From the NCBI GenBank assembly GCA_001643675.2, contig LSRY02000015.1, positions 248,001 through 312,000 on the forward strand: DNA of 64,000 bases, given 5' to 3'. The DNA comes from Monocercomonoides exilis PA203 (taxonomy: Eukaryota > Protista > Preaxostyla). Below, in pieces: positions 2,640 to 60,716 of the stretch. Below the pieces are notes generated by a model. It saw only the letters and a program-made list of their open reading frames with translations. It searched no databases and had not been told where the DNA came from. A program made the position numbers and the translations under genes. Positions within the stretch are counted from its first letter, which is position 1. The number at the start of each line of letters is the position of its first letter.

Positions 2640-5600
2640 CATGGTCAAAAAAAGAGAATTGCTCATTCCTTCAGCAACTGTCATCTGCATCCCTTTCCTT
2701 CCCTTTGTCGTGGAGAAGGTGTATTTCCAGCTGCATCCTCTGCTTTCATCGAGTCTGTGCAAATTCATTGAATTCGCGAAGAGCGAAGAAAACGTGGAAT
2801 GAAAAGTGGATTTGTGTATTGAGTGTGAGAGAAGCGAAGAAGAATCTTTCTTTTCGAGTTCAACTGACCATCATTCAATTGATAACAAAAGCCAGATGTT
2901 TGCGTTGAAGAAATTGCAATTTTTATGAACTCATCAAAATATGCAATGTTGGAAAGGCTTTCACATTGAAAAACATTCCCCTAAATACATCACAAGGCAG
3001 ACTCTCATTCAATAATAAAAAATCCTTTGAAATGCAAGTGAATGTTGTAAATCACTCATTTTCTTCATCCAAACAACATCAGCCTTTCTGTCAATCGCAA
3101 CTGCTGATTGATTTTCCTGCTTTCTGAAATGCTGCATCTGCAATGTCTCCAGGTTATTTTGGGTTTTCCCTCCATTGTTCTCTCCTCTCTGCAATTACAC
3201 AGCACATCACAGCTTCTTCAACAAAAAAGTTGTGTTTTCTCAAATATCTTCTCTTCCTGTTCTTCAAATTTAATTTCGCTCCTCTTTCATTCATTTCCTT
3301 GATGCTGCCCTTCCACATCAGCAAAAATACTTGTTTGGGCTGAGTCACAAAGAACAGTCATTGATAGCTGCGAATGAACAAACTGGGATAAATATCTATC
3401 TGATAAAATGCGAATGTGCAGAAAGAGGTGCAAACAATTGGAATTGGCAACTTTTTGCTGAAATATTGTTCGCAGAGACAAAGCCTGTCATGTGAGTTTC
3501 TTCAGTCACTCGGAACTCTGCAATGGCTGCTGCCAACTTGCCAGACAATGAAATTGCAATGTATTTCTTCAACTTTGACTGGGAAATTCAACACTGAAAG
3601 TTCAATGAAGAATGCTCACTCCAGCTGAAACACATTTCGCTTGAAAAGTGGATGGTGCTGCCAACTGCTCTGGAAACAAGCCCGATTAAGTTTCAAAGTC
3701 ATTTTCTGAGTTTATCAAAAATTCTGTCAATGATGAGCTGAATCGTCAAAATTGAAACTTCATTGATGATGCCTTGCTAACCCCAGCCAAGTTGTCCCAC
3801 CAAAAAATCATCACATGTCTTCCTCCACAGGCCTGCTTGCAATCTCCCTGAATGAAGTCATTTCTCCAAAAAAAAATTCAATGTTCATCAAATCGTCAAT
3901 GTATCAACTCCAAAAAATATCATGAAAAATATATGCACGCTTCAATCATTCCATTTATGCTCCTTTCATGTGAAACATTCAAATGCACAAATCTCGAAAA
4001 CACTCAAGATGAAAAGAACTCCCATGCAGTCATCACTCAATGCTCTCAAATTTATTCAGATGGGAAATAATCGCAAATGACAGTAACTTTGCAGCAGAAT
4101 TTTGGGGAAAATCATTCAATTTCCATTCTTCAAACAAAATGGGAAAAACAACAAATGCCTGAAAAACAGTCAGAGAGAAATGACTTCAAGCAGGCAATCT
4201 GCAAAACAATGGCAGATAAAGTGCAGAAGGTTTCTCAATATTTATTTTTTAACAAGAAATAAAACTTCTTCTCCACATTGCCCAATTGGTTGTTTTCGTT
4301 CAATCGCTCAATCCAGTATGGCTGATGATCAGGCTTTTATCAAAGAGTGAAAAAATAAGAAAACAAAATGAAACAAAAACCCATTCAAATGCTCTTGGTA
4401 AAATGTGAAAGGTGACCAAATAGTTATTTCTTGGTTTTGTGAGCAAGGATGCGTTGAAACCACAATGGAATTTGTGCATTTATTCTCATTTTCTAAAGCA
4501 AGATTTTTTTGTAGATAACAATAAATCATGTTTGAAAAATTCTTGGTTGAGAACAGAGAAGGGATTTCGACAAGGCCAGACACATGGCGTGGGAAGAATT
4601 GAATATTCAGAAACAAATAGGAATCAAACTCAGAGGTTTCCTTTGAATTAAGAACCGTAAATGCATTTTTTCCACTTTTTCTTTTTGATGCTTTCATTTC
4701 ACTCCACCCAAAAATGAGTAAGGGATTTGACGGGAATTTTCCATTAAACATCCTCAAGAAATGAGCATTTGTTCCTTTCTGGATTTAAAAATCATTCGGT
4801 TATCAAGAAAAGGCATTGTATTTGTTAATGCTTTCATATCTTTTAAATTGTATTTCAAGATTGTTCAGAAACTTGAATTTTTGCATGGCTGTTCATTTTA
4901 ACCAGCGATGCACAGCCATTTAGATGAACAGAAGATGAAATGAAGTGTTCAACAGCCAGCTCGCTTTGACCATTCCAAGCAAAATGATTGCCAAGAGCGG
5001 AGCAGATGTCTGTTTTTTCATCAAAACACAACAGGCCCCATGCCATGCAATCAAGTCCATTGTGAATAACTTCCATGTCTTTGGCTTGCTTTGAGCTCCA
5101 GCTGAAAATGTACCTCACTCACCTCATGAAGCAAGGTCAACAAAAAAATACAAACATCATTTTTGAATGCTTTGAAAGCCAGTTTTCGATTTAATGCCAG
5201 TCGATGGGCTTCGTATGTGCTGTTTCTATTCTCATTGTGAATCGACCTGACTTTTGTGAAGGCAAACTGCCTGTTTGAAAATCAAATGGTATCATCGAGA
5301 TCTGAGGTTTTCCAGAAAAGAATATTCCTGTATTCACATTAGTCACTGAAGTGGAAGAAGAAAATGTAGAAGAAGAAGAAGAAGCATGAAGAACGGAAAG
5401 ATTGAGTGAAGGGTTCAGAGTGGAAGAGGAAAGAGATGGATGCATCATTTTGCACACAGCTTAAAACGAATTGCAACTCTCCTCAACAAAACAAGAAAAG
5501 ATGGCACAATTTCATATTTGTCAATAAGAATCCCGACTAGCGAAGACCAGAAAAATGAAGGTGTGCTTTGGCTGTGTATTTCTTATTTGTTGTTATTTGT

Positions 5601-6430
5601 AAAGAAAACAGAAAATAAATGAAATTTACTGGAGAAAAAGAAATATTTTTTTAATTCATTAATGATTTTTGATTTTGATTTCAACACATTCAATTTTATC
5701 ATTTTTTGTTTTTTGTTATCTTTTGTTTTTTGAAGTGCTTTTGGCATATCAGTTGAGAAGGCCTGCATTCCACATCCTCTTTATGGACACAGAAGACTTT
5801 GCAAAAGAGTCGGTTTGCTGGAGAAAGGAGCTGAGCGTGTCTGAAAAGAAATGTTGTTCGTTCATTTTGACAAATAAATGAGAAAAAGAAGAAGATGATA
5901 ATGATTGTGAGAGAAGAGAAAAAGGAAATATGGTTATTTTTGGATGGCTGGGCTGAAGATGGCAGGAAAGCAATATGCAAAGTCCACAATGTGGAAACAC
6001 AAGGAGCAGATTGGGAATGAGATGCCAGAAAGAGGAAACAAAGAGGAAATATGGAGGAGCAGATGAAATGCTACTGGATCTGATGCTGCTGCCAATGAAA
6101 TTTCAAAAAGGTCTCTTCTGAAAAATGCAGAATGCGTGATTAATGATTGACAAGGAGAGAAAACAAGAGGCAATTTAGCAAAGATGCCTCGGTTGAGTGA
6201 GGAAAAGCAGAAACAAAAAAGAGAAAAAAAAATGTGGGGAGAAGATTGGAACCGAAGGGAAAGAAGAGAGAGAAGAAGAGGAAATTGAGGAATGGAAGAG
6301 ATGAAAAAAGGGATTGTTTGATGGGCCTTCATTCCGCCAAAAAAACAGGAATGTTTCACAAGGATTTCTATCTTTTGTTTTCAGGGAAGAGCAGAGCAGG
6401 GGGTGAAGAAGTGCTCATCATTTGAATGAA
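2640..6430 (+). pseudogene. Decayed coding-like region of unknown family (copy A)
   Basis: Higher GC than the flanks, many broken ORFs, colinear with 47530-51340. No recognisable motif; strand is tentative. Confidence 0.4.
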
Positions 6431-6706
6431 TTAAGAGATGAATCATTTTGTATTTCATTATTTTTTATTCATTGTCCAGATTTGTGGGACTTTTTTGAAA
6501 ACTTTTTTCCCCTTCAATTTATCCTCTCCTTTGATTCAATGAGGCTTAACGATATGTTAATTCAGTGCTTCAATTAGTATTTGATACTTTTCTCATTTCA
6601 TTTTCTGATATAATATTTGTTTGATATTTATATTTATATTTGAATTTATATTAATTAAAAATTTTGATTTTTATATAATTTTTTTCTTATGTTTTCATAT
6701 TTAATT

Positions 6707-9700
6707 AGATACAATGCAGATTAAGTTGGGAAATTTGAATTAATTGAGGTTTTTTAAATAAACCTCTATTAATTTGAATTAATACCCCTCAATTCAAATA
6801 AAAGCACAAAATTTAAAAATCACCATCCTAATTCAAATGTGGCAGAATATTCACTTTTATGAAAAAATCAATAATTTGTTTCAAACTTTAACTGCGATCG
6901 TATAATTATTTTTATGACATTCTCACGTAATCTTAAATATAAAAATATTCAAAAATCGAGGAAAATCTTTGAAAGTTCCATGTGGAACAAAATTCAAATA
7001 GCAAAAAAATTCGTCCCAAATTAGAAAAGATCATTCAAATTAATAATAATTGTGGGAAAGGAAAATAAAACAAACAAAAAACACTAATGAAAACAAAGTG
7101 GAAACAAAAGAAAAATCAAACCTTTTTTGACGATTTCATAAATGAAATCTTGATTATTCCATGGAAGCGTGAAAATGAGCATAAATAAAACAAAAATTAA
7201 ATTAATTATTTGTTAATAAAGTGAAAATGTTATTTGTTTTGAATTTTAAGTTAAGAATGATTCACTTTGAAGATAATTTTTTTCGTTTTTGCATAAAAAA
7301 TAAAAAGAAAACAACAATATTCTGTAAATTCTGAAGAATATATTTGTTTCGTGAGTGTATTTTATTATACTGAATATATTATCATATTTACATAGAATAG
7401 TGATGTTAAAGCTGCAGAATAATATGTTTATTTCCTTTTCCTTTTTCCTTTTCCTTATTTCCTCATTTTTTCTCTCATTTTCTCTTTTGCCGTAATCTCA
7501 TAATTTCAAAATGATCTTTCTCTTTTACTTAAATTTTGCCTCTCTCTTTCTTATCACTTCACGCATCTTCTTTATTTTCGTTATCATTTATCTCTTCATT
7601 TTCATACCACATCCCCATAAAATCTCTAATGCCAACTTCTTTGAAAAGAAGTACATTTTCTTCTTTTCACCTTTGCATCTGTTTTCAGAAGCATCCACGT
7701 TCTCTGTAATTTTTTCCTCCTTCATTTTCTCGTTTTTCGTTTTCCTTTCGCTCACATAGCAGCTGGAGAAATTTGTGTCACTCACTGAAAAGGAGTTGGC
7801 AGGGGCAGATGAGGCGAATGAGATGCACCCACCATTGGTGGAAGTCTGTTGGTTTTGTGGAGCTGAGTGGATGTTGGTGATGGTGCAGTTGGCGAGGGAG
7901 AGGGAGAGGGCAGGGGAGGTGGCAGAGGAGAGGACACAGCTGGCTGGAGTGGCTGTGGAGGTGATGTCGGTGATGTTGGAGGAGTTGAGGGTGAGGGGAT
8001 TTGTGAGGGAGGTGAGGTGGAAGATGCTTTGGCTGTTGAGGGAGAGACTGGTGATTGCTGTGTGGTTGAGGGCGAGGGAGCCAGCAGTGAGGAAGAAGAG
8101 GGGAGTTTTTATTGTTATGGAGGTTGTTCCGGTGATGGTGGTTGTGTTGAGGTTGAGGGAAGGGGAGTTTTGGGAGAGGTGGAAGAGGATGGGGGTGATT
8201 TGGTTTGTGGAGTTGTGGACGATGGCGAGGGCAGAGACTGTGAGGGAGCCCTGGGTCTGTTGGAAGAGGGCAGACGAGGCAGATGGATCTGGTGAAGAAG
8301 AAGATGTTAATGATGATGATGAGGATGAAAATGATGACGGAGGTTGAGGAATGCAATCTGAGGCGATGGTGGTGGTAGTTGTTCCATTTCCCGTGATTCT
8401 TGTGTCAAAAGCAAGGAAGATAAGTGTCTGGATGAGTGCAAAGGTGGATTTGAGGAGAATGAGAGATGCATCTTGGAGGAGGGCGAAGCCACTGAGAGCA
8501 TACTCGATTGTGGCACATGGGCTTTCCTGCGTTCGACCACAGGCACTGACATCAGTTCCGTTGTTTCCAACGATTTTGCTGTTTGCAATGAGAGGAAGCC
8601 AGCTGTTGACAGTTTCATTGGATGCTGTGTTGTTGAGAAAGATTCTGTTTGCGGGTGTTGTTGATCCACAATTCTCAAATGGAGATTGGGTGATTGCATC
8701 ACCACTGAAGAACACATCATTTCCTCTGCCATTTTTGGCAGTGTTGCCATCGAAAAAGCAGAATGCGATGAATTTGACTTCATTCATCCAGGAATATGTG
8801 TCTCTGAAAAATATTACAGCACCTCCCCATGAAGTTGAGGTAGCATTCAGTTTATTGTTTGTAAATTGGCAATCATCAACCAAAAACTGACTTGGTTTGT
8901 TTCCTGGAGGCCAAATGAATGAAAAAGGGCCAGCAGAATCACTACCAATATTTATAATACACTTGCATTTGGTGAATAGAAACTGAGAATTTGATTACAT
9001 GTTTTCGAGCCTGAAATACCAACCAGTTCCACGCCAATCAGCTATTGAGCAATTATCCACTCTGTTTTCTGAGAATGTCCAGACAGAACTGGATAGAGGA
9101 TAAGCTATACAAGTTGCTCCTCCATGTCTCGCCTGGCAATTTGTGAAATTCGATTTTGTGATGCTGATTTGCAAAAAATTTTCACAAAACAAAGCTCCTC
9201 CTTCACCATTGCTTGATGTACATTTGTTGAATGAGCAAGAAATGATAGAGAGATTTGCATTTATACACTCAACATGAAGAGCTCCGCCATGATTCGATCC
9301 ACCATTTGAATCGTTCCATTCGCACCACTCGAATCGATGACTGTTCACATAAAACGAAATCAGTCTTCCAGGTTTCTTTTTATTAGTTTCATTTCCAATA
9401 TGTTCAACAGGAGCATTTGGTGTAGAGCTTGTTTGGCGAAGAAAGGAGGTGTCAAAGGCAGGGAAAAAAGTGTCGGAGCTGCAAAAAGAAGAGAAGATAG
9501 AACTGTTGATGATGGTTTGAGTTTGCTGAAAAAGAAATCTGTCAGCCAGGACACGATAGAATAAATAGATGGGATCGTCGAAATTTGATTTGCACTTTCG
9601 AGTAATCCTGAGGATAGAGTGTGTTATAAATGTGGGATATCCAAATGCAAAATGTTTATAGAATTTGGAACTGTAAGAAAATTGTGTAATCGGCTAAATA

Positions 9701-10406
9701 ATTATATAAATATCGAAAAAGTCAAATTTGTTAAAAATAGAAATGTTTAATACTCAAAACGAAATCTTGAAAAAGAAACGTATATACCTTTTAATATTCA
9801 GTGTTTTATATATTTTTTGTTAATGATTTTTGGTATTGTTTTACAAAAAGGTGAAAAATGAAAAACAATATTGTTTGAAAATAGCTGTTGCTTGAAACGG
9901 GAAAAGCAGTAATTACCTTATGAGCACTGAACAAAATGGCACAGAAGTTGTCGTTGGTGCTACAGTTTTAAAGAAACAGTTCACAATTGTGAAGAAATAA
10001 ACTGAAAGTTTTCAGAAGCTTTTATGATTTGTATATTGGGAAAAATGACTTTTTAATTGCAATAATCATTCAAACTCTCGTTATAAAGCTCACATTTTCA
10101 ATAACATAAGTTGGAATAGCATTTTAAACGAATTATCGAATTATTCAATTTTTTCGAAGAAGATTATTGAAAGATCAAAATTTTTCAAAAAGAGAATCAA
10201 AAGAAACTTCAGTATTTTATATCAATCTTTTATGCAAATCATTTAATGTTATCTATTTTCATGTTTTGCATATTCAATTCAAAATTGGATGAAGATTTTT
10301 AAAATAAGCAAGTCAATTTAAATAAACAGGGGTTATTTTAAATAACCCCCACAATTTTAAATTATTTTTTCAATTTGAATAATTTGATTCAATCTGCATT
10401 GTATCT
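6707..10406. mobile_element. Non-autonomous TIR element (3,700 bp) carrying a captured gene fragment (Pack-type)
   Basis: Perfect 16-bp TIRs AGATACAATGCAGATT (6707-6722) and AATCTGCATTGTATCT (10391-10406). ATT is duplicated (6704-6706, 10407-10409). The paralogous empty site tta-att-atttcatatattg lies at 51611-51629. Subterminal palindromes at 6746-6766 and 10329-10349. Confidence 0.9.
7588..9693 (-). pseudogene. Fragment of an adhesin/Pmp-like beta-helix surface protein gene (cargo of the TIR element)
   Basis: One frame is open from 9693 to 7588 except a single TAA at 8997-8995. Motifs FEWCEW..GGAL, GGAVIF, NxAxxGxGNDVF and CGRTQESPCATI are shared with the large receptors. Likely acceptor (ttag) at 9694 and donor (GTGAGC) at 7756. 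No TM or kinase part. Confidence 0.75.
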
Positions 10407-10627
10407 ATTATTTCATATATTGTCAGATGCTGATTCATAAAGCTGAATATATGAAGAAACAGTATTATTCCAAGGCTGCATCAAATATTTTGTGAATTAT
10501 TATCAAAATGAAATGTCTAATATTTATATTCTTTTCAATCAGGAATTGAAAAAATATTTTATTATGGCCATTTTGATCCTTCAAAAAATAATTTCATTCA
10601 TCATCAAAATTGTGTTATCTCATTGAA

Positions 10628-13600
10628 ATGAATGTGCATTTGCGGTATTTGGTGTTCTTGCTCCTTGCAAACATGTTTGAAATCCAAGGCGTTTCTGGAA
10701 GTTCCACATGGAAAAGCGAAGGTTTCCTCTCAAATGTTCATTTTTCTAATTATCATGCTTTCTCAGGCCAAGACAATGCAAATGATGCTCGATTCCCATC
10801 AAAGGGAGATGACAACTGTTTATTTGAACAGAAAAATGTTCCAGAAGTGAAAAAGTGGCAGTCAGGAAGATTATCAGTGATTAATGCATTTTTGGGATTC
10901 TACAATTCCACGGTTGGACTGAAAATTTTGGCATTTGAATATTCTTCTCCATCATGTGTGCAAATAATAGACAAGTCAAGTGTAGTGATGGAATCGTGTG
11001 TTTCCCACCAAAAATCAACAACTCCTTTTCTTTTGCAAAGTGGGTCAATCAACATTGTGAATTTCACTATGATCCCTCAAATCAGTCTTTGTTCCAGAAG
11101 TCTCGTATTTTCATCTGATGATTCAAATTCGGTCGTTTTGAGAAATTCCATCATGGCAGATATGGCTGTTTCCTCTTCAGATTATTTCTTATTGTCTGGT
11201 CAGAGCAAAAGTGAACAGATTGATAATTGTGTCTTCAGGAACATGTCTGTGAAATCTGACAAAAGCAGTGATTATAAAATGGAACGTTTTTGCCATCAAA
11301 GTTCAATGGAGAGCTGCCTCATTTATTCGTGTGTGAATGTGTTTGAAGGAGGGATCTCAGATGGATCGCTTTCATCAGAGGAATTTATCTGCAGAAACAC
11401 ATCAATAAGCTTTGGGAAAAGAGAAACGAATGCTCTTGAGAAAAAAGGACAGATGAATATAACCGATTGCCAATCATTTTCGTTGTGTGAATGGACTGAT
11501 TGCACAGCACCGCAAGGAGGTGCTCTTTATGTGCATGACAATGAAAATGCCATTCTGAAAGTTGAAAATTCGTCATTCACAAGATGCAATGCTTCTTCGA
11601 AAAGAGGGGGTGGAATATATGCTTTGAATGTTGCAGAATGCATTGTCCTTCATTCTGCGTTCCTTCAATGTTCATGTGCTGCTATAGATACAGACTGTGG
11701 TGGTGGAGGAATAATGATTGAGAACGTCAACATGCAACCAATGGTTGATAATTGTTTATTTAACAACTGTTCTTCAGGCGACGATGGAGGGGCAATTGAT
11801 CTTCGTCCAACGATGACAAAAAAACAGAAGAAATGCATTGTTAATTCATTCTTTATAAACTGCAAAGCAAATCACACAAGCTCATCCACTGGAGGTGCAA
11901 TTGAGCATTGGGACTGCATTGACAAGGTTGTAATTTCAAATTGTTTGTTTCGGAATTGCCATTCCATGTGTGGAGGAGGTGCAGTTTGTCAATGGATTAA
12001 TGAGAATAATAACGGAATTTTGTTTTACTACTGTTTTTTCCATAATAATACATGCGTAAAGGGAGGACATGACGTTGTTCTCTATGATTCCACTGAAAAC
12101 AATATTGATTCCAGCTGTTTTTCAACCAAGAAAACATCAAACAGAGTTAGCACAAAATTCAGCTCAGTTGTTGACAAAAGCGATTCACTTCGAAACGATT
12201 TTGGAAGAATCAGATTTGTTTCCTCTGTGCAAACACAATTAAATGCCAAAGACACATATGCCTGTGGGCTGGATAAAAGCTATCCTTGCAACACCATCAG
12301 CCATTGTTTAACACAATTGATTCCAGACTTTGTCACCAATGTTGAAGTATTTTCAGAGACGATAGGAGAGACGAAGAGCGTGGACTGTGGAACAAACTCT
12401 TTCACAATATATGGTCAAAGTGATTCAACAACAACTGTGCAGACAGAATTGGAAGCAGCTGGGTTGACTCTTTTTTCAGTCTCGACAGGAGCATTGACAG
12501 TCAATGATCTTGCCCTTGTGCATGACTCAGCATATGAAAATAATCGAGCCTCAAGGCTGTTTGAGATCACTGGAACTGGAAAGATGCATGTTAGCAGACT
12601 GAACATATCTGTTGGAAGCGGGCACTCAACAGAAACAGCATTCACCACAGAACTGATAAATGTTCAGGGAGGAATATATCAAATGGAAAACGTGAACTGG
12701 GCAAAGACCCTCTCAACAACTTCGCTGATTTCGCTTTCTTCGACAAATGAGATTTCATTGACACTTTCAGTGTGCACATTTTCTGGGATGGAAAGAACAA
12801 GGAATGGAGCAGCTGTGATGTCGTTTTCCAACGACAAGGCAAACATCGATCTGGATTCTTGCACTTTTGAAAGATGCGGAAGCACAACATCAGAAAATGG
12901 AGGATCGATGATGCTATGTGTGGGAGAAGCAAATGAAGTGAAAGTGGAAGGTGGATCTTTCGATGAGTGCTTTTGTTCTTCTTCCAATGGTATTGGAGGA
13001 GGAATTCTTCTTCGATTGATAAAGGAAAATCCAGATTTCCTGATTTCTTCTTCCTTTGGCACAAACACAGCCAAGTGGGGAAGAGATCTTTTCGTTCTTT
13101 CTCAAAATCTGGAAGTGACTTCAAAGTCACAAAAAATCGCATGCGTCACTGCCTCTTTGGATTCTTTTGATAAAGTTCGAGGATATGAAAACGGAAACAC
13201 GAGTTTGGCGATCCCTCTGTGCATCTATCTCCTTCCCACTCCAGAAGACATTTATGTGAGCAATACCGAGGCATATGATCATTCACATTGTGGAATTGTC
13301 CAATTCCCTTGTTTGACAATGAAGCACTCACTCACACGACAAACAGGAACAAAGAAAATTGTTGTGAATGGAATGATTTCAATGAGCGATGAATTGGCAT
13401 TTGAAGAAAAGAAACATGAAATCAGAGGAAATGATGAACAAAGTGGCTGGACAGTCTCTGATGCAAATGAAACATCCAATTCAGCGATGATAACAGCAAA
13501 TGTTGAAACAGAATTATCAAAGCTCATATTCTCTCTTCCTTCTTCTCTTTCATCACACTCCACTTTCATTTCTTCATCTTCACAACTGACTATGTCTCAT

Positions 13601-16600
13601 TGTTCGCTTTTCCTTCAAGACCATTCATCTGAATTGGCATTGCTATTCTTATCTGTTGAGTCTGGGACATTGGCTATCGACTCGTTTTCAGCTTCATCAA
13701 TCACTTTGAGTGGAAATCCATTGATCTCGTTGAGAAGAAGCACAACAAACACAGAGTTGATGAACATTCAGTGGTTGAACATGACGAACTGCAATTTCAC
13801 AGAAATCGAAAGAGCAGCTGGAAGTGGAGGCTGTGTGAGCATCGATAACAGCAATGATGAAGATTCAAATGGAGAAATAAATATTGAAGAATGTGATTTT
13901 GAAGAATGTTCTGTTTTGGCTGAGGGAAGCAGAGGAGGGGCTATCAATGCTAAGTTGAAAGGGAATATTCAAATGAATATCACTTCATGCACATTTACAG
14001 GATGCACAGCACCAGCTGGAGAAGAGAAGACTGGGTTTGGAGGAGGGATGGCACTGAAGTTGATCGATGGCCTTTCTTCATTTGTGATCTCATCCCCTGT
14101 TTTTGTGGAAGACAAGCCAAATGTTGCGAAATACGGAAATGACCTGTTTGTTGAGGCATTCAACTTGACAAAGAGCATCACAAACACCTCTCTTCCATTT
14201 GTATCTGGGCATCTGTCTGATATTTCGTTGGATTCTATGAGAGGGTTTGATGGGAATGATACTGAGAATGCTATTCCACTGATTTATTTCTGGAGAGCAA
14301 TTGGCTCAGGGATATTTATCAGAGATGATGGAAAAGATGTATGCATTTGCGGGTTTTCGGATTATCCATGCCTGTCAATTGATTATTCACAAACAAGATT
14401 GACTGAAGGAAACGAAAGGATAATCAGCGTTATTGGGAAGGGGATTCTTCAGAAGAGTGTTGATGTGAGTGGGTTTTCAATAAGCTCAAATAATACAGAC
14501 ATGTGCTCTTTGGAATGTCTCTCATCTCTTGAAGGAGCAGAAGGAGCAGCAATGAAGATTTCTGGAATTACCAATTTCGAGCTAATTAACTTTGTGATTC
14601 CATCTTCATTCACAGGTGGAGTCAATTATTTGATGCATGTTGGATCAAGTGAAGGGATATTGACCGTGAAAGACTGCTCATTCTCAAAAAATGAAGAAAG
14701 TGGAGAAGACACGATTATGTTTGGACTGATAAAGGCAGAAAGAGGCACAGTTCAATTGGAATTTGTGTCAATGCAATCACTTAGCTTTTCAAAGGATGTT
14801 ATTTCTGTGCTGTCAACAACAACATTGAACATTAAAAACCTTACGATGAAGAAAATTGAGCTAGATGGATCAAGTGGATTGAGGATATCAAAGAGTTCAG
14901 GGAGAGAAAAAAATGAAGTTGAACAAGATGTTATCGTTGAGTGGAATTCATTGGAAGAAATCACCCAGAACACAACAGATGATATTCCCATCATCCGAAA
15001 TGACAACGATGATACGCCTTTGAAAATGGTGATTCGAAACACAACGATGAAGAAGTGTGGCGGAACGAGGTGTGGAAAGGGAGGAGGGATGTTTTGTGTA
15101 TTGAATGAGGGAGGAAAGTTTGACTGCTCATTTTGCACGATTTCTGAGTGCTTCTGCTCCACCACAGGAAGAGGCGGGTGGCTGTTTCTGGAATGTACCT
15201 CGGTGGTTGAGCAGCCTCTGAACTTTGTTCTCTCAAACATCACATTCAGAGGCAACTCTGCATTGAGAGGGAGAGATGTGTATGTGAGATGCCATTCAAT
15301 CGAAACACAAATAGTTGATGAACAATTCCTTTTGGATTTCAGAACACCATTTGTGAAGGAGCTGGCAATATGGGGATGCACAACAGACTCGTTTGTTGGG
15401 GAAGAGGATCTTCTGCTGAGGGTTGTGAAATATCAGAGTGAGACGATATTTGTTTCTTCAGCAACGGGCAACCATGGAGATAGCAAGCAATGTGGAGAGT
15501 TCAATGCTCCATGCCACTCATTGGATGTTGGAGTTCAACACATCATTCCATCATCATATTCTCAACTGTTGATCTCGAAGGAGACAGTTATTGTTGGGAA
15601 ATGTGATGTGCATGATGTGATCATTCGCTCACTTGAGTCTCCCTCAACTGCTTTGGTGCATCTGAACTCAACAATTGCTGGCAATGAGGGCAGTCTTCTC
15701 AAAACTTCTGAGAAAGTTCGGATTGAGAGTGTGAAATTCAACTTTGACCAGTCATTTTCATATTCAGGCAGCTCTATTATCCATGAAGCAAGTGGGCAGC
15801 TTTCTCTTTCATTTGTTGACTTCGCATCTGTTGGAGAATCAAACAACAATCAACTTGTTGTTGTTTTCAACTCAACATTACTGAGCATTTCAAAAGGGAT
15901 TCTTCATGTTGACAACTGTTCAATATCAATGCTTTCATTCAAGAAGACTTCATTTCTGCTAAATGGAGATGAGGTCTCATTCACAAATATGAAGCTGGAA
16001 CAGATAGAATCAACAACAAATTTATTTGAATTTGGCAATTGTGGAAGTGTTGTGCTGAATGGAATTGATGCTGATGGAGTGAAGTTGTCTGAAGGTTGCA
16101 TCATTTTGATTGGCAGCTCAACTTCGGGAAGTGTTTCGGTTGGAAGCTCCTCATTCAAGAACTGCTCGAGGAATTCAGAAGGGGCTTCTGTTCTTTCTTC
16201 TTCCTCGACATCTGCTCAAATTGTTCTTTCAAATTGTTCCTGTTCAAATTGTGATTCTCTGTCAAGCAAAGGAAGCATGATGGAGATGAACAATACGAAG
16301 GATGTTTTGATAGATTCGTGTCGATTTGTTGGAGTTCTTGCAAAAGAAAGTGAAAGAAAGAGAAATAATGCATTTGAAGAACTTTGTAAGTGGAATAGTT
16401 CGGTTGTTGATTTCTTAAGCAGTTCTGTGATGATGAAAGATACAACAATCTGCAACTCATCAAAGGGAGGGATAACAGTGAGTGGAGGATCTTTGATGAT
16501 TGAGAAAGGAGAGTATTCAAACAACAATCCATTCATTGAAAAATATCCTTCTCTTCGTCGAAACATCATTTGTTCAGACTCTTCTTCATTGACCATTTTC

Positions 16601-18391
16601 AGTTTGAAAGGAGGAGATGGAGTGAAGGATGACTCATCGATGTGGATATTGAATGAAGGATGTCTGTTTGAAGGGATTGTTTCTGAAAGAGCATCACCAT
16701 TTTTCATTCCAGTGTTGGAGGGTGTTGAAGCAAATGAGAAAGGAGAAGAAGTTGAGGTTGTATTCAAAGGGAAGCTTCTTCTCCCGTGCAACTTGTCATT
16801 CATGGTTGTGAAACAGATTGGAGATGAAAAGCAGATCGAAAAGTTTGTGTTTGATGAGAGTGGATATGTTTCGGAGACAAAAGTTAGAGGGAGATTGGCA
16901 AGGGAGATGATAAGTGAGGCAGGAGATGAGGCAGAAGTGAGAGTGAGCATTCTGTTTGGAGATGCTGACAAGCAATCATCAACTGATCCTTTTATTCTGA
17001 AGAACAGAAGTGAGCCCAGGGTTAATGGAGATGAAAGGATTGTTGAAGGAGGAAAAGAAGGGAAATCATATTGGTTGTTGATTGTTTGCATTGTGATTGT
17101 TGTAATACTGCTTGTGGTCATTATTGTTCTGGCTGTTCGATGGAAGAAGGTTAAGAATGAAGCAGAAGATCTGAGAGAGATTGTGAACGATAATATCAGA
17201 AAGGATCCGAAAGCGTTTGAGATGGTGACAATGGAGATGTCACCTGAGGAGCAGTGGAGGAGAGCAGAGAATGAGGCAGAGAAGAAGAATGATGTGAGGA
17301 TGAAGAAGAGGGTGTATGCGAAAAGCTTGGAACATTCAGAGTCATCAGAGCATCTTCTTTCTGAGAGTGGCTCCACTGAATATATATTGGGAAAAGATTC
17401 TGATAAGATCCCAGAATGGGCATTGGAGAAGGTTGAAGAAGAGGAAATTAGAAAACAGACTCCTTCTCCATCCATTTCTTCGACATGCTCAACTGACTCA
17501 GATTCCACATTTGTTCGAGGGGAGGATTTGTGCCCAACCACCTCATCGATGTCGAACTTGGTGGATGCAATGGCCTGTTCATCTCCTCACGAGAAACTGA
17601 TTGTGGACTTGAGGGATTCACTGTTCATGCTGCTTCATGGGCTGAACAAGACAAAGGAAATGCCGATTGGCACATTGAAAGAAAGAGAGCAAACAGCTGC
17701 CCAGATCCTGTTCTGGGTGGCTAACCTTGCACTTCACTCGTTTGATGAAATGGAAAACCCTCTTCAATCTCTTTCCAATCTGAGTCCTCACATTGTTCTT
17801 TTCTCCGAACACATGGTGATCTGCATTGTGATGCATTCAGACTTATTGTCAGATGATGATTCAGATTCCTCATCCATCTCATCATCAACAGTTGTGACAT
17901 CTGCCAGTGGCAACGATGATGATGACTCCCTTCCCTCGTCTGCCTTTGAGGATGAAGATAGTTTCAAAAAAGAGTGTCTGAGGTGGAAGGCACCAGAGCT
18001 GCAGATAAACAAGAAGATGGGAGCAACAAAGGAGTCAGTGTCATTCTCGATTGGGATGATGCTGTGGGAATGTTTGACTCTTCAAATCCCATTTGGCGAA
18101 TATGAGGCAGAGGTTGCAGGGCAGAAGATCGTGAATGGGGAAAGACCCCCACTGGAGATAATTGGAGGGAGTTCGAAGTTGGACATTGTAAAGAGTTGTC
18201 TGGAACAGAACAGCCAGTGTCGAGGAACATTGAATGGATTGAAAAGAGAGCTCATTCAGGGATTTCCACCAGGTGCCTTGATAATGACGATTTCTGATGC
18301 AATCACACTTGAGCCAGACAGTGGGATTGAGAGTGGGAATGGTGAGGAAAATGGTTCTTTGTGCACAAACAGCACAACAACTGTCAAATGA
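10628..18391 (+). CDS. Large receptor-like protein: signal peptide, repeated Cys-rich/beta-helix (GGA..FxxN/C) ectodomain, single TM, C-terminal pseudokinase
   Basis: Uninterrupted 2,587-aa ORF from ATG 10628. Hydrophobic N-terminus; four CGxxxxPCx(I/M/L) modules; TM WLLIVCIVIVVILLVVIIVLAV followed by RWKK; kinase C-lobe motifs WKAPE, SFSIGMMLWECLT..PF and GERP. Confidence 0.9.
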   Translation: MNVHLRYLVFLLLANMFEIQGVSGSSTWKSEGFLSNVHFSNYHAFSGQDNANDARFPSKGDDNCLFEQKNVPEVKKWQSGRLSVINAFLGFYNSTVGLKILAFEYSSPSCVQIIDKSSVVMESCVSHQKSTTPFLLQSGSINIVNFTMIPQISLCSRSLVFSSDDSNSVVLRNSIMADMAVSSSDYFLLSGQSKSEQIDNCVFRNMSVKSDKSSDYKMERFCHQSSMESCLIYSCVNVFEGGISDGSLSSEEFICRNTSISFGKRETNALEKKGQMNITDCQSFSLCEWTDCTAPQGGALYVHDNENAILKVENSSFTRCNASSKRGGGIYALNVAECIVLHSAFLQCSCAAIDTDCGGGGIMIENVNMQPMVDNCLFNNCSSGDDGGAIDLRPTMTKKQKKCIVNSFFINCKANHTSSSTGGAIEHWDCIDKVVISNCLFRNCHSMCGGGAVCQWINENNNGILFYYCFFHNNTCVKGGHDVVLYDSTENNIDSSCFSTKKTSNRVSTKFSSVVDKSDSLRNDFGRIRFVSSVQTQLNAKDTYACGLDKSYPCNTISHCLTQLIPDFVTNVEVFSETIGETKSVDCGTNSFTIYGQSDSTTTVQTELEAAGLTLFSVSTGALTVNDLALVHDSAYENNRASRLFEITGTGKMHVSRLNISVGSGHSTETAFTTELINVQGGIYQMENVNWAKTLSTTSLISLSSTNEISLTLSVCTFSGMERTRNGAAVMSFSNDKANIDLDSCTFERCGSTTSENGGSMMLCVGEANEVKVEGGSFDECFCSSSNGIGGGILLRLIKENPDFLISSSFGTNTAKWGRDLFVLSQNLEVTSKSQKIACVTASLDSFDKVRGYENGNTSLAIPLCIYLLPTPEDIYVSNTEAYDHSHCGIVQFPCLTMKHSLTRQTGTKKIVVNGMISMSDELAFEEKKHEIRGNDEQSGWTVSDANETSNSAMITANVETELSKLIFSLPSSLSSHSTFISSSSQLTMSHCSLFLQDHSSELALLFLSVESGTLAIDSFSASSITLSGNPLISLRRSTTNTELMNIQWLNMTNCNFTEIERAAGSGGCVSIDNSNDEDSNGEINIEECDFEECSVLAEGSRGGAINAKLKGNIQMNITSCTFTGCTAPAGEEKTGFGGGMALKLIDGLSSFVISSPVFVEDKPNVAKYGNDLFVEAFNLTKSITNTSLPFVSGHLSDISLDSMRGFDGNDTENAIPLIYFWRAIGSGIFIRDDGKDVCICGFSDYPCLSIDYSQTRLTEGNERIISVIGKGILQKSVDVSGFSISSNNTDMCSLECLSSLEGAEGAAMKISGITNFELINFVIPSSFTGGVNYLMHVGSSEGILTVKDCSFSKNEESGEDTIMFGLIKAERGTVQLEFVSMQSLSFSKDVISVLSTTTLNIKNLTMKKIELDGSSGLRISKSSGREKNEVEQDVIVEWNSLEEITQNTTDDIPIIRNDNDDTPLKMVIRNTTMKKCGGTRCGKGGGMFCVLNEGGKFDCSFCTISECFCSTTGRGGWLFLECTSVVEQPLNFVLSNITFRGNSALRGRDVYVRCHSIETQIVDEQFLLDFRTPFVKELAIWGCTTDSFVGEEDLLLRVVKYQSETIFVSSATGNHGDSKQCGEFNAPCHSLDVGVQHIIPSSYSQLLISKETVIVGKCDVHDVIIRSLESPSTALVHLNSTIAGNEGSLLKTSEKVRIESVKFNFDQSFSYSGSSIIHEASGQLSLSFVDFASVGESNNNQLVVVFNSTLLSISKGILHVDNCSISMLSFKKTSFLLNGDEVSFTNMKLEQIESTTNLFEFGNCGSVVLNGIDADGVKLSEGCIILIGSSTSGSVSVGSSSFKNCSRNSEGASVLSSSSTSAQIVLSNCSCSNCDSLSSKGSMMEMNNTKDVLIDSCRFVGVLAKESERKRNNAFEELCKWNSSVVDFLSSSVMMKDTTICNSSKGGITVSGGSLMIEKGEYSNNNPFIEKYPSLRRNIICSDSSSLTIFSLKGGDGVKDDSSMWILNEGCLFEGIVSERASPFFIPVLEGVEANEKGEEVEVVFKGKLLLPCNLSFMVVKQIGDEKQIEKFVFDESGYVSETKVRGRLAREMISEAGDEAEVRVSILFGDADKQSSTDPFILKNRSEPRVNGDERIVEGGKEGKSYWLLIVCIVIVVILLVVIIVLAVRWKKVKNEAEDLREIVNDNIRKDPKAFEMVTMEMSPEEQWRRAENEAEKKNDVRMKKRVYAKSLEHSESSEHLLSESGSTEYILGKDSDKIPEWALEKVEEEEIRKQTPSPSISSTCSTDSDSTFVRGEDLCPTTSSMSNLVDAMACSSPHEKLIVDLRDSLFMLLHGLNKTKEMPIGTLKEREQTAAQILFWVANLALHSFDEMENPLQSLSNLSPHIVLFSEHMVICIVMHSDLLSDDDSDSSSISSSTVVTSASGNDDDDSLPSSAFEDEDSFKKECLRWKAPELQINKKMGATKESVSFSIGMMLWECLTLQIPFGEYEAEVAGQKIVNGERPPLEIIGGSSKLDIVKSCLEQNSQCRGTLNGLKRELIQGFPPGALIMTISDAITLEPDSGIESGNGEENGSLCTNSTTTVK

Positions 18392-19337
18392 AAAGAAGGT
18401 TCAAACTTTCATATCAGAGAGAGAAAGTTGAAAATCAGAAAATGGAGAATGTAGATTTTTGAGAGGAAAAGAATGAACAAATAAGTTATTTCGCTTATGA
18501 ATGGCTGACACCATCAATCACCACGATTTATTTCTTTCTTTTGATTTGTGATATCACTAGAAATATTTTTGTTAGAAAAATGGGAAGGTGCACACGTTGT
18601 GTGTTTTTCTTTTGTTTTGAATTGAAGATTTGAGTTTGTTTGATATTTTAATTTAAATTGTCAATTTGGACTGCTGTGCTTTTTGTTTCTTCTGAAGTCT
18701 GACTTCGCCTTGGTTTTTGAAATTTGTCACAAGATTTTCGACCATTTTGTTATAATTCATGTTTGTCACAATTTACATTTCACACAAACACATTGATATA
18801 TTTCACTTTTGTGTTTTCGTGTTACCATTTGACTTCTAATTTTTGTTCATTTGTTATTCAATATTTTGTATTTTGCGTTTGTAATATGTATTTCCATTGA
18901 GTTTTATTGAGTTTATATAATCAGTAACCAGCTTTTTGAAGCACTATTTTTATATATTCAATCCTTCTTTGCACTTTTCACTCACACTTTGAGCTTTTTT
19001 CAAAATCTTCTTTTGTTTTGAATCAGCTTTAATCATTTCGTTTTATTAACAATTTTCAACAAAGAAACAATTATTAAATTAACTTCCATTCAATTCATCA
19101 AAAATAATTCAAATTTGAGTGTTGTGAATGAATTCGAATGCTGGGAAATACAATCGCAAATATCTTTTTGTTTTCAATTGATGATGTTTGTTCTTTGCAC
19201 AAAAATTATCATTGAAATTAAAACGGTATAACTTGATATGTCTTCAAAAAATTTGTGGTTCAATATTCAAAGAATTTTATTGAAAGAAATTTCAAATTTT
19301 AGAAAGTTGTGAAATTTCTGTGTCTAAATGATAAAAA

Positions 19338-47529: not shown

Positions 47530-50500
47530 TCCTCATTGTCATACACACAAAATGCCCATTCCTTCAGCAACTGTTATCTGCATCCCTTTCCTGCTCCTTG
47601 TTGTGGTGAAGGAGTCTTTCCAGCTGCATCCTCTGCTTTCATCGAGTCTGTGCAAATTCAAAGAATTCGCGAAGAGCGAAGAAAACGTGGAATGAAAAGT
47701 GGATTTGTGTATTGAGTGTGAGAGAAGCGAAGAAGAATCTTTCTTTTCGAGTTCAATTGCCCAGCATTCAATCGAGAACAAAAGCCACATGCTTGCTTTG
47801 AAGAAATAGCAGTTTTCATGCAATCATCAAAAGATACAATGTTGGAATGGCTTTCACACTGAAAAAACATTCCCTTCAATTCTTCACAAGGCAGACTCTC
47901 ATTCAATAAAAAAAACAATCACTTCACAATACTAGTGAATGTTACCAATCACTCGTTTTCTTCATCCAAACAACATCAGCCTTTCTGTCAATCGCAACTG
48001 CTGATTGATTTTCCTGCTTTCTGAAATGCTGCATCTGCAATGTCTCCAGGTTATTTTGGGTTTTCCCTCCATTGATCTCTCCTCCTCTGCAATTGCACTG
48101 CACATCACAGCTTCTTCAACAAAAAAGTTGCGATTTCTCAAATATCTTCTCTTCTTGTTCTTCAAATCCAATTTCACTCCTCTTTCATTTATTTCCTTTT
48201 CATCTCCCTTTCGTTTTAGCTAAAATACTTGCTTGGGCTGAGTCACAAAAAACAGTCATTGACAGCTGCAAATGAACAAACTGAGATAAATATCTTTCTG
48301 ATGAAATGCGAATGTGCAGAAAGAGGTGCAAACAATTGGAATTGGCAACTTTTTGCTGAAATATTGTTCGCAGAGACAATGAATGTCACGTGGGTTTCTT
48401 CACTCACTCGGAACTCTGCAATGGCTGCTGCCATCTTGCCAGACAATGAAATTGTGAGGTATTTCTTCAAATATGACTGAGAAATTCAACTCTGAAAGTT
48501 CAGCGAAGAATCCTCGCTCCAGCTGAAACACATTTCGCTTTAAAAGCCGATGGTGCTGCCAGCTGCTTTGAAAATAATCACGATTCAGCTTCAAACTTAT
48601 TTTCTGAGTTTATCAAAAATTCAGTTAATGATGAGCTGAATTGTCAAAATTGAAACTCCATTTGTGATGCCTTGCAAACCCCAGCCAAGTTGTCCCACCC
48701 CCAAAAATCATCACGAAATTTCTCCCAGAAGTCTGCTTGCAATCTCCCTGAATGAAGTTATTTCTCGGGAAAAAAATTCAATATTCATCAAAACATCAAA
48801 ATATCAACCTCCAAAAATATCATGAAAAATATATGCACACATTGTGCATCAAACATATGCTCCTTTCATGTGAAATATTCAAATGCACAAATCTCGAAAA
48901 CACTCGTGATGAAAAGAACTCCTATACAGTCATCAATCAATGCTCTCAAATTTATTCAGATGGGAAATTATCGCAAACGACAGTTGTTTTGCAGCAGAGC
49001 TTTGGGGATAATCAAGCAACCTCCATTCTTCAAACAAAATGGGAAAAACAACAAATGCCTGAAAAACAGTCAGAGAGAAATGACTTCAAGCAGGCAATCT
49101 GCAAAACAATGGCAGATAAAGTGCAGAAGGTTTCTCAGTATATTTTTAAACAAGAAAGCAAAACTTCTTCTCCACATTGCTCAATCGGTTGTTTTCATTC
49201 AATCGCTCAACCCAGTATGGCTGATGATCAGGCTTTTATCAAAGAATAAAAAAATTCATAACCAAATGAAACAAAAATTCATTCGAATGCTCTTGATAAA
49301 ATGTGAAATGTGACCAAACAGATATTTCACGGTTTTGTGAGCAAGGATGCGTTGAAACCACAATTGAATTTGTGCATTTATCCTAATCCTTTGAAGCAAG
49401 ATTTTTTTGTAGATAACAATAAACAATGTTTGAAAAATGATTGGTTGAGAACAGCAAAGGGATTTCGACAAGGCCAGATACATGGTGTGAGAAGAATGGA
49501 ATATTAAGAATCAAATTGGAATCAAGCTCAGAAGTTTCCTGGAATTGAGAACTGAAATGCATTTTTTCCACTTTTTCTTTTTGATGCTTTCATTCCTCTC
49601 CACCAGGAAGGGAGTGAGGGGTTAGATTATCATTTTCCATGAAACTTCCACAGGGCATAAGCATTTGTTCCTTTCTGGATTTAAAAATCATTCGGTCATC
49701 AAGAAAAGCAATTGAATTTGGTTTGTGCAAATTTTTCTTTTTTTGTTTTTCAATATTGTTCAAAAACGAGAATTTTAACTTATCTGCTCATTTCATCCAG
49801 TATTGCACAGCCATTTAGATGAACAGAGGATGAGATGAAGTGTTCAACAGCCAGCTCGCTTTGACTATTTCAAACAAAACGATTGCCAAGAGCGGAGCAG
49901 ATGTCAGAGGCTGCATCAGAACACAACAGGTACCATGGGATGCAATCAAGTCCATTGTGAATAACTTCCATATCTTTGGCTTGCTTTGAGCTCCAGCTGA
50001 AAATGTACCTCACTCACCTCATGAAGCAAGGTCAACAAAAAAATATTCAACCATCATCTTTGAATGCTTTGAAAGCCAGTTTTCGATTCAATACCAGTCT
50101 ACGTGCCTAGCATGTGGTATTTCTATTCTCATTGTGAATCGACCTGATTTTTGTGAAGGCAAACTACCTGTTTGAAAATCGAGTGGAATCATCGAGATCT
50201 GAGGTTTTCCAGAAAAGAATATTCCTGTATTCACATTAGTCACTGAAGTGGAAGAAGAAAATGTAGAAGAAGAAGAAGAAGAAAAATGAAAAGATTGAGT
50301 GAAGGGTTCAAAGTGGAAGAGGAAAGAGACGGATGCATCATTTTGCACACAGTCGAAAACGAACTTCAACGCTTTTCAACAAAACAAGAAAAGATGGCAC
50401 AATTTGATATATGTCAATAAGAATCCCGACTAGCGAAGACCAGAAAAATGAAGGTATGCTTTGGCTGTGCATTTCTTTTTTGTTATTGTTATTTGTGAAA

Positions 50501-51340
50501 AAAAACAAAAAATAAAAATGGAACTAGCCAAAGAAAAAGAAATATTTATTTTGTTCTTTTATCATTTTTTATTTTGATTTCAACACATTCAATTTTATCT
50601 TTTTTTGTTAGTTGTCTTTTGTTTTTTGAAGTGCTTTTGGCATATCAGTTGAGAAGGCCTGCGTTCCATATCCTATTAATCGGAACAGAAGACTTTGCAA
50701 AAGAGTCGGTTTGCTGGGGAAAAGAGCTGAGCGTGTCTGGATAAAAACTGTTGTTCGCTCACAGAGATAAATAAATGTGCAAGAAGAGGAAGATTGCTGG
50801 GAGCGAAGAAAAAATGGAAATAAGGCTATTTGAATGGCTGGGCTGAAGATGGCAGGGAAGCAATGTGCAAAGTCCACAATGTGGAAACATGAGGAGCAGA
50901 TTGAAGGAGATTACAGAAAGAGGAAACAAAGAGGAAATATGGAGGAGCAGATGAAATGCCACTGGTTCTGATGCTGCTGATAATGATGTCTCAAGCAGAT
51001 CTCTTCAGAAAAAGAGTAGAATTTGTGATAAATGGTTGAGAAGGAGAAGATTGCAGAAGAAACAAAGTTCAATTCATCCAAGATGCTTGTGCAGAATGAG
51101 GAAAAGGAGAAACAAATAAGAAAAAATAAACAACAAAGAAGATATCAGAGAGAAGATTGGAACTGAAGGGAAAGAAGAGAGAGAGAAGAGGAGATTGAGG
51201 AATGGAAGAGAGGAAGAAAGGGATTGTGGAATGGGCCTTCATTCAACCAAAATAATAGAATGTTTCACAAAGATTTTCATCTTTTGTTTTCAGGGAAGAG
51301 CAGAGCAAGGGGTGAAGAAAGGCTCATCATTTGAATGAAT
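47530..51340 (+). pseudogene. Decayed coding-like region of unknown family (copy B)
   Basis: Paralog of 2640-6430. Confidence 0.4.
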
Positions 51341-51832
51341 CAAAAGATGAATCATTTTGTATTTCTAAATTTTTTATTTATTAGCCAGATTTGTGGTACT
51401 TTTATGAAAACTTTTTTCTTTTTTCAATTTATCCTTGGCTTTGATTCAATGAGATTTAATGGTATGCTTGTTCAGTGCTTCAATTAGAATTTGATACTTT
51501 TCTCATTTCATTTTCTGATATAATATTTGTTTGATATTTATATTTATATTTGAATTTATATTAATTAAAAATTTTGATTTTTATATAATTTTTTTCTTAT
51601 GTTTTCATATTTAATTATTTCATATATTGTCAGATGCTGATTCATAAAGCGGAATATATGAAGAAGCGTTGTTATATCAAGGCTGCATCAAATATTTTGT
51701 GAATTATTATCAAAATGAAATGTCAAACATTCATTTTCTTTTCAATCAGGAATTTGCAATATTTAATTATGGCCATTTTGATCCTTCAAAAAATAATTTC
51801 CTTCATCATCAAAATTGTGTTATCTCATTGAA

Positions 51833-59584: not shown

Positions 59585-60716
59585 AAGGAATGAAAAAAGA
59601 CAATGAAGAATGAAAAAAAATAAATAAATAAATAAAAATAAAAAAAAAAAATAAAAATAAAAATAAAAGATAAGAAACGATGCATGCAATTATGAGGAAT
59701 GATTGATGGATAGAATCGGATTTGGAATCGGATTTAGAAGCGATTTTCTGATGAAAGATTTTGAGAATGTGTAACTTTGAATGTTGCATCTCTGCTTGAT
59801 TGAGCAAACACATGCTTTGAAGAGAAAAAGATTGCGATTTAACGATCAACCTGAATCTTTTTAGCTATTCAAAGCAATTGTAACATGAAAAAAAGAAAAA
59901 AGAACCATTTTTTTCTTTCAGTGTTTCTTTCGTTATTTCTTTGAGCAGTTGGAGTTGTTTTGATCACGCCTAGGGAAACAAAAGTTAAGCATCATCAGAA
60001 CAAGAATATTTATGTGATGAAAACTGATTATTTCCACTGAAAGCAAACAGTTCCGTAGCACATCTATTATGGGGGATAATCACAGAGTATTTGATTTCCA
60101 TTTTTCAGAATATGTTAAAACGGCTGCACTTAAAGTTGGAGCGCAGCCAAGGTGGATGGTCATTTATCCAATTGTCCAGACAATTGGCAGCATAGGGCCA
60201 CATAATCCTGTCTGCATAAACACAAGTTTTGGCACATCTATTAACTCTTCCGAATGGAAGTACAGCATTCCATTCTTCTCAAGGAATGAGAGGAATACAA
60301 CATTGGAAGGCAAAGATTTGTTGGTGCAGTTGAAATTGTTGATGACCACATTGAATTTTTCACGATTTTTTTGAGATATAGGTGATTGCGATTGGGGTGG
60401 ACTTTTTAATGGGACACTTTCCTTTATTGGCACTTTATTTGTTTTGATGTGCCAATCAAGCGAGAATTCCAAATTAGTTTCAATGCCCTAACTGACCTTT
60501 TAAATCAAATTTTTTTACACTATTATTTGCAAGGTAGTTATTTTTTTGTTTTTGTTTGTTATCCATTTCGAAATTGAGGTGTTTTTTTGTTTTTTGTTAA
60601 TTTCAAAGTTATTCTAAACATCCAACAAAGATTTTCTCAAAAATCTGAAACAGAGATTTGAAAAATATTGACTTTTGTCTATTTATCTTTGAAAAATATT
60701 CAAAAGATTTTAAAAC

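Follow-up and report, generated by a model that had tools for sequence, protein, structure and literature searches.

The DNA analysed here is a stretch of 64,000 bp from the oxymonad protist Monocercomonoides exilis PA203, a harmless gut commensal (assembly GCA_001643675.2, contig LSRY02000015.1, positions 248,001 to 312,000 of the forward strand), which is called the window below. Its positions 6707–10406 are occupied by a 3,700-bp element, and both termini of this element can be read directly. The element is very probably a non-autonomous PIF/Harbinger transposon, namely a deletion derivative of an autonomous element of about 6.3 kb, which carries a fragment of a host receptor-like gene that was captured at the level of the whole family and was later overwritten. 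The notable feature of this family is the evolutionary decoupling between the cargo and the arms that surround it.

The superfamily could not be named in the first-pass annotation of the window. By sequence, the element can now be assigned to PIF/Harbinger, on the grounds of a DDE_Tnp_4 transposase that is encoded in longer copies with the same ends, a target-site duplication (TSD) that is 3 bp and A/T-rich, and short terminal inverted repeats (TIRs). Copies of 6.3–16.4 kb that have the same ends as the window copy encode this domain (PF13359). For example, the match at L034:6037-7965 reaches an E value of 2.6e-16 (60 bits, with a cutoff of 24.8) and the match at L040:1421-2788 an E value of 1.8e-15, and both loci share their TIRs and arms with the window copy. 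The stretches of the D...D...E signature are readable in the transposase (LLVDATT, ADKGYQG and VEWFFGR), and a weak HTH_Tnp_4 match lies immediately upstream of the DDE domain. The first-pass annotation had proposed to look for an autonomous copy that encodes a transposase, and such a copy was found: one intact transposase gene of the lineage (642 aa) was detected in the genome search, at C14:1137701-1139626. MONOS_9377, which is annotated as ‘uncharacterized protein’, is 100% identical to part of this C14 open reading frame (ORF). Decayed transposase copies of the lineage are located in contigs C24, C38, C6 and C58, and other Harbinger lineages in the genome are 45–53% identical to its transposase.

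The canonical autonomous form is about 6.3 kb long, as in the C24 copy, and the copies in C14, C38 and C58 hold further insertions. Autonomous and non-autonomous copies are collinear over the gene-sense positions 1–2616, which include the cargo, and over the last ~170 bp, and this collinearity argues that the short form is a deletion derivative which kept the cargo and lost the transposase. About 700 bp (window ~7058–7747) are seen only in the short copies, which have either gained or kept them. As to the further insertions, the one in the intact autonomous copy lies at L034:3043-5563 (G000:C14) and its scanned ORFs have no Pfam match, and an insertion of 3.4 kb is found at element positions ~6188–9637 of the C38 copy.

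In the M. exilis assembly (82,301,135 bp in 101 contigs), the 16-mer AGATACAATGCAGATT has 146 matches with at most one mismatch, and the reversed control has 0. These matches belong to two classes, which are the element ends, of two subterminal types, and a coding site in a host gene family; about one third of the exact matches examined are the coding site rather than element ends. The end-specific patterns of 32 nt gave 29 (type 1) and 24 (type 2) matches with up to three mismatches (controls 0), which indicates roughly 30 elements in the genome. Among 20 element pairs checked, including the window copy, 18 have identical 3-bp flanks (ATT in 12, AAT in 5 and ATA in 1), and the two pairs without a matching TSD are a tail-to-tail double copy (L035) and the C24 copy, one end of which is decayed. 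Thus, further copies of the TIR with a consistent 3-bp TSD, on which the first-pass annotation had made its interpretation depend, are present. The TIR is perfect over 16 bp in the window copy and in most sister copies, and all copies of ~3.5 kb have the whole interior in common, at 75–89% identity.

Some longer arrangements were also observed. L035 (G000:C16:1225255-1232169) consists of two element copies placed tail to tail in a palindrome of 6.9 kb without internal TIRs, and L038 (G000:C33:989915-997045; 7.1 kb) contains one element copy and 3.7 kb of other sequence, with matching AAT flanks. Two other candidates for longer elements were rejected, since the ‘TIRs’ of L048 (C6, 4.8 kb) are the host coding 16-mer, and a 14-kb ‘pair’ in C13 is the host coding 16-mer within a large palindrome composed of host genes.

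In the window copy, the TIR of the type 1 end, downstream of the cargo in gene sense, is AGATACAATGCAGATT at 6707–6722 on the plus strand (at least 29 genomic ends, control 0), and the TIR of the type 2 end, at 10391–10406 on the minus strand, is its exact reverse complement (at least 24 genomic ends, control 0). The duplicated ATT stands at 6704–6706 and 10407–10409. Direct reading of 6704–6722 and 10391–10409 therefore bears out the 3,700-bp element with perfect 16-bp TIRs and an ATT duplication that had been described at first, and the same is true for its empty paralogous site: the sequence ...tttaATTatttcat... contains one ATT, at 51614–51616, without a footprint. The element locus and the empty site are the two copies of a segmental duplication of ~15 kb (~2657–18400 versus 47550–59600; 85–91% identical), and the two copies are spaced ~44.9 kb apart before the element and ~41.2 kb apart beyond it, which is a drop by the element length. 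This drop, together with the empty paralog, indicates that the element was inserted into one paralog after the segmental duplication.

The element-specific arm downstream of the cargo (6707–7747, minus strand) includes the ~7058–7747 stretch that is confined to non-autonomous copies, and the arm upstream of the cargo (9678–10390, minus strand) is common to the transposase-encoding copies. A subterminal region at 6723–6838 contains a palindrome (6746–6766) and the motifs ATTTGAAT and AATTCAAAT, and it recurs in other copies; a second palindrome is located at 10329–10349 in the upstream arm. These palindromes and repeated motifs agree with the first-pass description, and the two terminal 150-bp stretches hold 5 of the 32 ATTTGAAT motifs of the window. 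The subterminal sequences of the window copy recur at the ends of sister copies, and the region at 6723–6838 is presumed to contain transposase-binding sites. As had also been noted, the window copy contains no transposase.

The cargo (7748–9551, minus strand) is an internal fragment of a giant receptor-like gene family. It is about 1.8–1.9 kb long and may extend to ~9677, where the copies start to differ by type. In comparison with the distant paralog in the window, it corresponds to about residues 200–800 of ~2,700, without the N-terminus and the membrane and kinase parts of the receptor, and it derives from the distal ‘head’ module of the ectodomain and not from a tail piece. Host loci match it with 72–80% aa identity and 77–84% nt identity (590–2,321 first-look candidates), and most of the matches sit in open frames of 2,500–3,100 aa. 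The host homology ends at one base throughout, window position 7748; past this boundary the annotated host proteins continue as ...SVSE-DTSSGG... and the element copies as ...SVSE-RK.... All copies contain the cargo with the same boundaries, including the copies that encode the transposase, and these common breakpoints point to an old, family-wide capture and not to one made by the window copy. The giant gene next to the element (10610–18391) is not the donor, since it is only 25% identical to the cargo.

On the minus strand, the cargo is one frame of 701 codons, from 9693 down to 7591, which is broken only by an in-frame TAA at 8995–8997 into the pieces 8998–9693 and 7591–8994, with no usable start codon upstream. 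Because this frame is continuous and collinear with uninterrupted host ORFs, the apparent splice sites described in the first-pass annotation are not upheld, and the conclusion drawn from them, that genomic DNA and not cDNA was captured, loses its ground. A candidate intron of 16 nt at 8980–8995 was rejected as well, as it is the in-frame TAA and both ORF pieces lie in one frame. A polypyrimidine-AG at ~9677, at the 5' edge of the cargo where the copies start to differ, may represent the end of a host intron. Since it contains one stop and lacks a start codon, the fragment in the window copy is a decaying pseudogene piece, and for the same reason the proposal that the element moves ectodomain modules holds only in the sense of passive transport.

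The cargo had also been described as about 2 kb of a beta-helix adhesin-like gene, of which the 1.8–1.9 kb of receptor-gene sequence stands; a beta-helix-like fold is weakly suggested. Chlam_PMP matches the cargo at E 0.28, below the cutoff. In the AlphaFold model, the mean predicted local distance difference test score (pLDDT) is 54, and residues ~25–250 are all-beta at a pLDDT of 70–90. Using Foldseek with this model, no hit with E<=0.001 was obtained, and the weak top hits are nearly all beta-helix proteins (PL6 lyases, tailspikes and Ag43). RNA contigs, taken from public short contigs, fall only within 7408–9423, the part shared with host genes, and in neither arm; such contigs are indistinguishable from host-gene transcripts, and their confinement to the shared part means that they give no evidence for transcription of the element.

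The different histories of arms and cargo are most visible in the hypervariable cargo core (8338–9352, minus strand), where most copy pairs are 65–77% identical, while the arms are 80–95% identical. Along the element, the identity between copies in 150-bp windows ranges from 57% to 98%, and in the 3' third of the cargo the copies are 85–93% alike. The relationships also change from segment to segment. In the 3' arm, for example, L041 forms a clade with L037, L039 and L050, whereas its core places it with L044 and L046. The core of the window copy is 94% identical to that of L031, yet at positions 740–1060 the window copy is 92% identical to L041 and only 59% to L031, otherwise its closest relative. 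With maximum-likelihood trees, the approximately unbiased (AU) test rejects the arm tree on the core data (p 2.9e-85) and the core tree on the arm data (p 2.2e-74).

Substitution rates separate the two parts in the same way. In the core, pairwise synonymous distances (dS) are 0.7–1.3 and nonsynonymous distances (dN) 0.18–0.35, with a ratio (omega) of 0.2–0.34 (about 0.25); in the 3' third of the cargo, dS is 0.1–0.3 and omega 0.3–1.0, and the distance in the non-coding arms is about 0.1–0.2. The core versions thus appear to have split long before the arms, under purifying selection, in working genes. We also compared the number of stops with the neutral expectation from the arm branch: L043 has 0 stops versus 5.4 expected, L039 has 1 versus 7.6 and L049 has 1 versus 10.2, and the numbers are near neutral in the window copy (1 versus 2.6) and in L031 (4 versus 5.0).

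For the genome similarity searches, 40 candidates were scored per query. With the L043 core as query, the 12 best of the scored genomic matches are host loci with 80–83% identity, ahead of almost all sister elements (at most 80%). In the core protein tree, the cargos of the elements are interspersed with three host proteins, and a topology forced to keep the elements in one clade is rejected (delta log-likelihood 54.7, AU p=0.0009). The discordance between segments, the old core dS and the nested host proteins together indicate that the core was replaced by other versions of the gene family, which would most likely have taken place by gene conversion. In the simplest reading, the fragment was captured once, with fixed breakpoints, and the core was afterwards replaced repeatedly through homologous recombination with other family members, besides some exchange between elements.

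From the anatomy of the copies, the following course can be proposed. An ancestor of the family would have captured ~1.8–1.9 kb out of the region of a giant receptor-like gene that codes for the ectodomain, and its descendants would have kept this fragment between the same breakpoints, with or without the transposase gene. The DDE_Tnp_4 transposase, supplied in trans from the MONOS_9377 locus (C14:1137701-1139626), would recognise the 16-bp TIRs and the subterminal repeats of the ATTTGAAT type, excise the element and reinsert it at A/T-rich trinucleotides, with duplication of 3 bp. In this way, and once the local segmental duplication had taken place, the window copy would have landed 204 bp upstream of a giant receptor gene. 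Since the fragment has hundreds of homologous paralogs in the host, its core is open to overwriting by homologous recombination, and the hypervariable core would have been overwritten repeatedly, by gene conversion with other family members. Patches would also have been exchanged among the element copies, and the arms would have been inherited with the element. Exchange is indicated into the elements only, and the idea that the element-borne fragments are a mobile, dispersed gene-conversion reservoir which feeds variation back into expressed receptor genes is regarded by us as quite unlikely. More speculatively, diversifying recombination might be triggered in receptor genes through nicks or cuts by the Harbinger transposase at an in-frame TIR-like site.

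Several other explanations were considered. According to one, the 3.7-kb copy itself took the fragment from a nearby gene in a one-off Pack-type capture, and the presence of a giant receptor gene from the same superfamily at a distance of 204 bp would agree with this. However, that neighbour is far too distant from the cargo (25% identity), at least 20 copies on other contigs and the transposase-encoding copies have the same fragment with the same breakpoints, and the different flanks and TSDs exclude these sister copies as segmental duplicates of the window locus, so that a one-off capture is extremely improbable. An assembly artefact, with a Nanopore assembly rich in repeats wrongly joined at the insertion or at the empty site, is likewise scarcely credible. 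The short public contigs bridge no junction, as such an artefact would have it, but a mis-join would have to account for perfect TIRs, an exact 3-bp TSD and a paralog that lacks precisely the element and one ATT, and the same architecture and TSD rule are found at ~20 other loci.

The receptor-like ORF could also be a functional gene of the element, as a substitute for the second ORF or as a benefit to the carrier, in which case the low dN/dS would result from selection in the elements. The ORF is kept in every copy, at the usual position of Harbinger ORF1 and in the same orientation as the transposase gene; the core omega is about 0.25, a few copies have long open frames of 570–621 codons, and some copies are annotated as MONOS genes. 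Against this, neither a start codon nor a signal peptide is conserved, the frame is interrupted by stops or frameshifts in most copies, and RNA contigs are found only in the host-homologous part and not in the arms. Besides, selection is unable to make the synonymous distance 5-fold the arm distance, and host proteins nest among the cargos, and we therefore judge a functional ORF to be very unlikely. Alternatively, the mosaicism could arise solely from recombination between elements, for instance by template switching in gap repair after excision, with old alleles shuffled without host genes. The alternation of the window copy between L041 (at 740–1060) and L031 (in the core) is of this kind, and since the patch starts at ~735, at or just beyond the detectable host homology, some element-to-element exchange is likely. 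As the only source of mosaicism it is nevertheless unlikely, because it accounts neither for the origin of alleles with a dS of about 1 and an omega of about 0.25 nor for the cargos with fewer stops than their arms predict, and because some cargos are nearer to host proteins and loci than to any sister element.

The reading of a non-autonomous PIF/Harbinger element with a captured and overwritten cargo also has points that weigh against it. Only a single intact transposase gene of the lineage was found genome-wide, and no Myb/SANT-like second ORF was detected by Pfam at E<=1 in the other unspliced ORFs of the intact autonomous copy. All copies are at least ~8–10% apart, which leaves recent activity unproven, and neither transposition itself nor an excision footprint or an insertion polymorphism was seen. 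The public DNA contigs (Logan, ~60–190 nt) cover the whole stretch and none bridges a junction, so there is no read support for the junctions among these short contigs. The core protein tree took in only three annotated host proteins, which are called ‘host’ solely because they read past the capture boundary. Finally, an intact donor gene, for which the first-pass annotation had suggested a search, was not found in near-identical form for any cargo among the 40 candidates scored per query; the best host match is 83–84% nt for L043 and 76–80% for the window copy. Accordingly, either the conversions are old, or the donors were lost, or the search missed them.

The host coding 16-mer mentioned above is a second connection between the element and the receptor genes. 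The exact TIR 16-mer occurs in frame (ESALYL) in intact coding sequence of giant receptors, in the same family as the source of the cargo, and it lies in the ectodomain, ~1,600–1,900 residues downstream of the captured module. Loci with this site are L002, L009, L014, L017–L019 and L025–L028 (positions 1501–1516 in each), for example G000:C17:294764-294779. By a rough estimate, a chance origin of the shared 16-mer is unlikely (below 1e-3), and the reversed control has no match in 82 Mb. The coding 16-mer aligns by eye without gaps to the distant paralog in the window, and is thus native coding sequence rather than a transposon remnant. The element arms were not found to have any extended similarity to the host coding sequence on either side of the coding 16-mer, and for this reason capture through this 16-mer as an alternative element end was rejected.

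Well-known PIF/Harbinger elements are maize PIF, rice Ping/Pong and zebrafish Harbinger3_DR, and HARBI1 is a host-derived relative; many lineages of the superfamily, not all, have a Myb/SANT-like second ORF. The M. exilis family resembles them in having DDE_Tnp_4 after a weak HTH_Tnp_4, short TIRs, a 3-bp A/T-rich TSD, subterminal repeats and many non-autonomous deletion derivatives, whose mobilisation in trans is deduced here from anatomy. It differs from them in its TSD, which is ATT, AAT or ATA instead of the textbook TAA/TTA, in that no Myb/SANT-like second ORF was detected among the unspliced ORFs of the intact autonomous copy, and in the fragment of a host receptor gene that stands at the usual place of ORF1, also in the copies that encode the transposase.

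That DNA transposons capture genes is well documented for plants, and metazoan cases exist too. Pack-TYPE elements were defined by Gisby & Catoni (2022; PMC8903248) together with a plant survey that includes Pack-MULE, Pack-CACTA and Harbinger-PIF. The window copy agrees with this definition (PMC8903248), since it is a non-autonomous class II element with TIRs and a TSD, without transposase, in which a fragment of a host coding gene is multiplied. The first-pass name of a Pack element can be kept to this extent, with the correction that the capture was family-wide and not made by the window copy. Unlike Pack elements, which typically hold many different captures, one capture is common here to a family of ~30 copies, and the autonomous relatives carry the same fragment, which departs from the usual case but not from a formal criterion of PMC8903248. 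Moreover, the host is an oxymonad protist, and the cargo core appears to have been replaced repeatedly by other versions of the gene family; ‘gene conversion’ is absent as a term from the main text of PMC8903248.

The cargo copies can also be compared with silent archives. Silent cassettes and pseudogenes serve as archives for gene conversion in several systems, such as the variant surface glycoprotein (VSG) pseudogenes of trypanosomes, Borrelia vls and the chicken pseudo-V genes. In both situations, incomplete and non-expressed pieces share tracts with full-length surface-protein genes through homologous exchange. The difference is that in M. exilis only exchange into the transposon copies is indicated.

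Full-text literature searches returned no paper that describes Harbinger elements or Pack-type capture for oxymonads or Monocercomonoides. The M. exilis genome papers (PMC8767320, PMC6759080) report 35% of the assembly as ‘unclassified repeats’ which overlap the largest gene family, the tyrosine-kinase-like kinases, and give DNA transposons only as a total. From the present analysis, a transposon family, its transposase gene and its target rule can be named, and part of the ‘uncharacterized protein’ annotation is transposon cargo. The captured fragment is not simply decaying, since its core was probably re-written from the host family (dS about 1, compared with about 0.15 in the arms). If the exchange were two-way, the transposons would spread raw material for receptor diversification in a protist.

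Some further features of the window and of the genome were noted. The window copy contains a nested dispersed repeat of ~178 bp (6839–7021), similar to a miniature inverted-repeat transposable element, with an apparent 5-bp duplication CAAAT (6834–6838 and 7017–7021). It is absent from sister copies, and accounts for the length of 3,700 bp compared with ~3,515 bp in these copies; public DNA contigs from sister copies skip exactly the stretch 6839–7021. At least 349 first-look candidates of this repeat exist genome-wide, and the 41 scored matches are 73–93% identical. The neighbouring giant receptor-like gene (10610–18391, plus strand), which starts 204 bp from the right end of the element, encodes a protein of 2,593 aa in which a hydrophobic stretch is membrane-like and the C-terminal domain is kinase-like; the gene is a distant relative of the cargo.

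Receptor-module sequence was also met in other arrangements. The gene models P0025 and P0026 (contigs of 810,774 and 869,231 bp), one of which is named ‘putative nuclease HARBI1’, join the C-terminal part of a Harbinger transposase to receptor-gene sequence that runs from mid-module past the SVSE boundary. Their transposase belongs to a different Harbinger lineage, so they were rejected as members of the lineage of the window element, and they derive either from another Harbinger family that captured receptor sequence or from insertions in receptor genes. In MONOS_9448 (P0022, on a contig of 1,379,369 bp, the length of C17, which bears the L049 copy), upstream exons with a signal-peptide-like start are joined to cargo-like receptor-module sequence, and this model is either an exon-shuffling candidate or an annotation artefact. 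The region G000:C25 ~1.5–2.5 Mb is very dense in matches to the cargo module, many of which lie in short open frames of ~715–875 aa.

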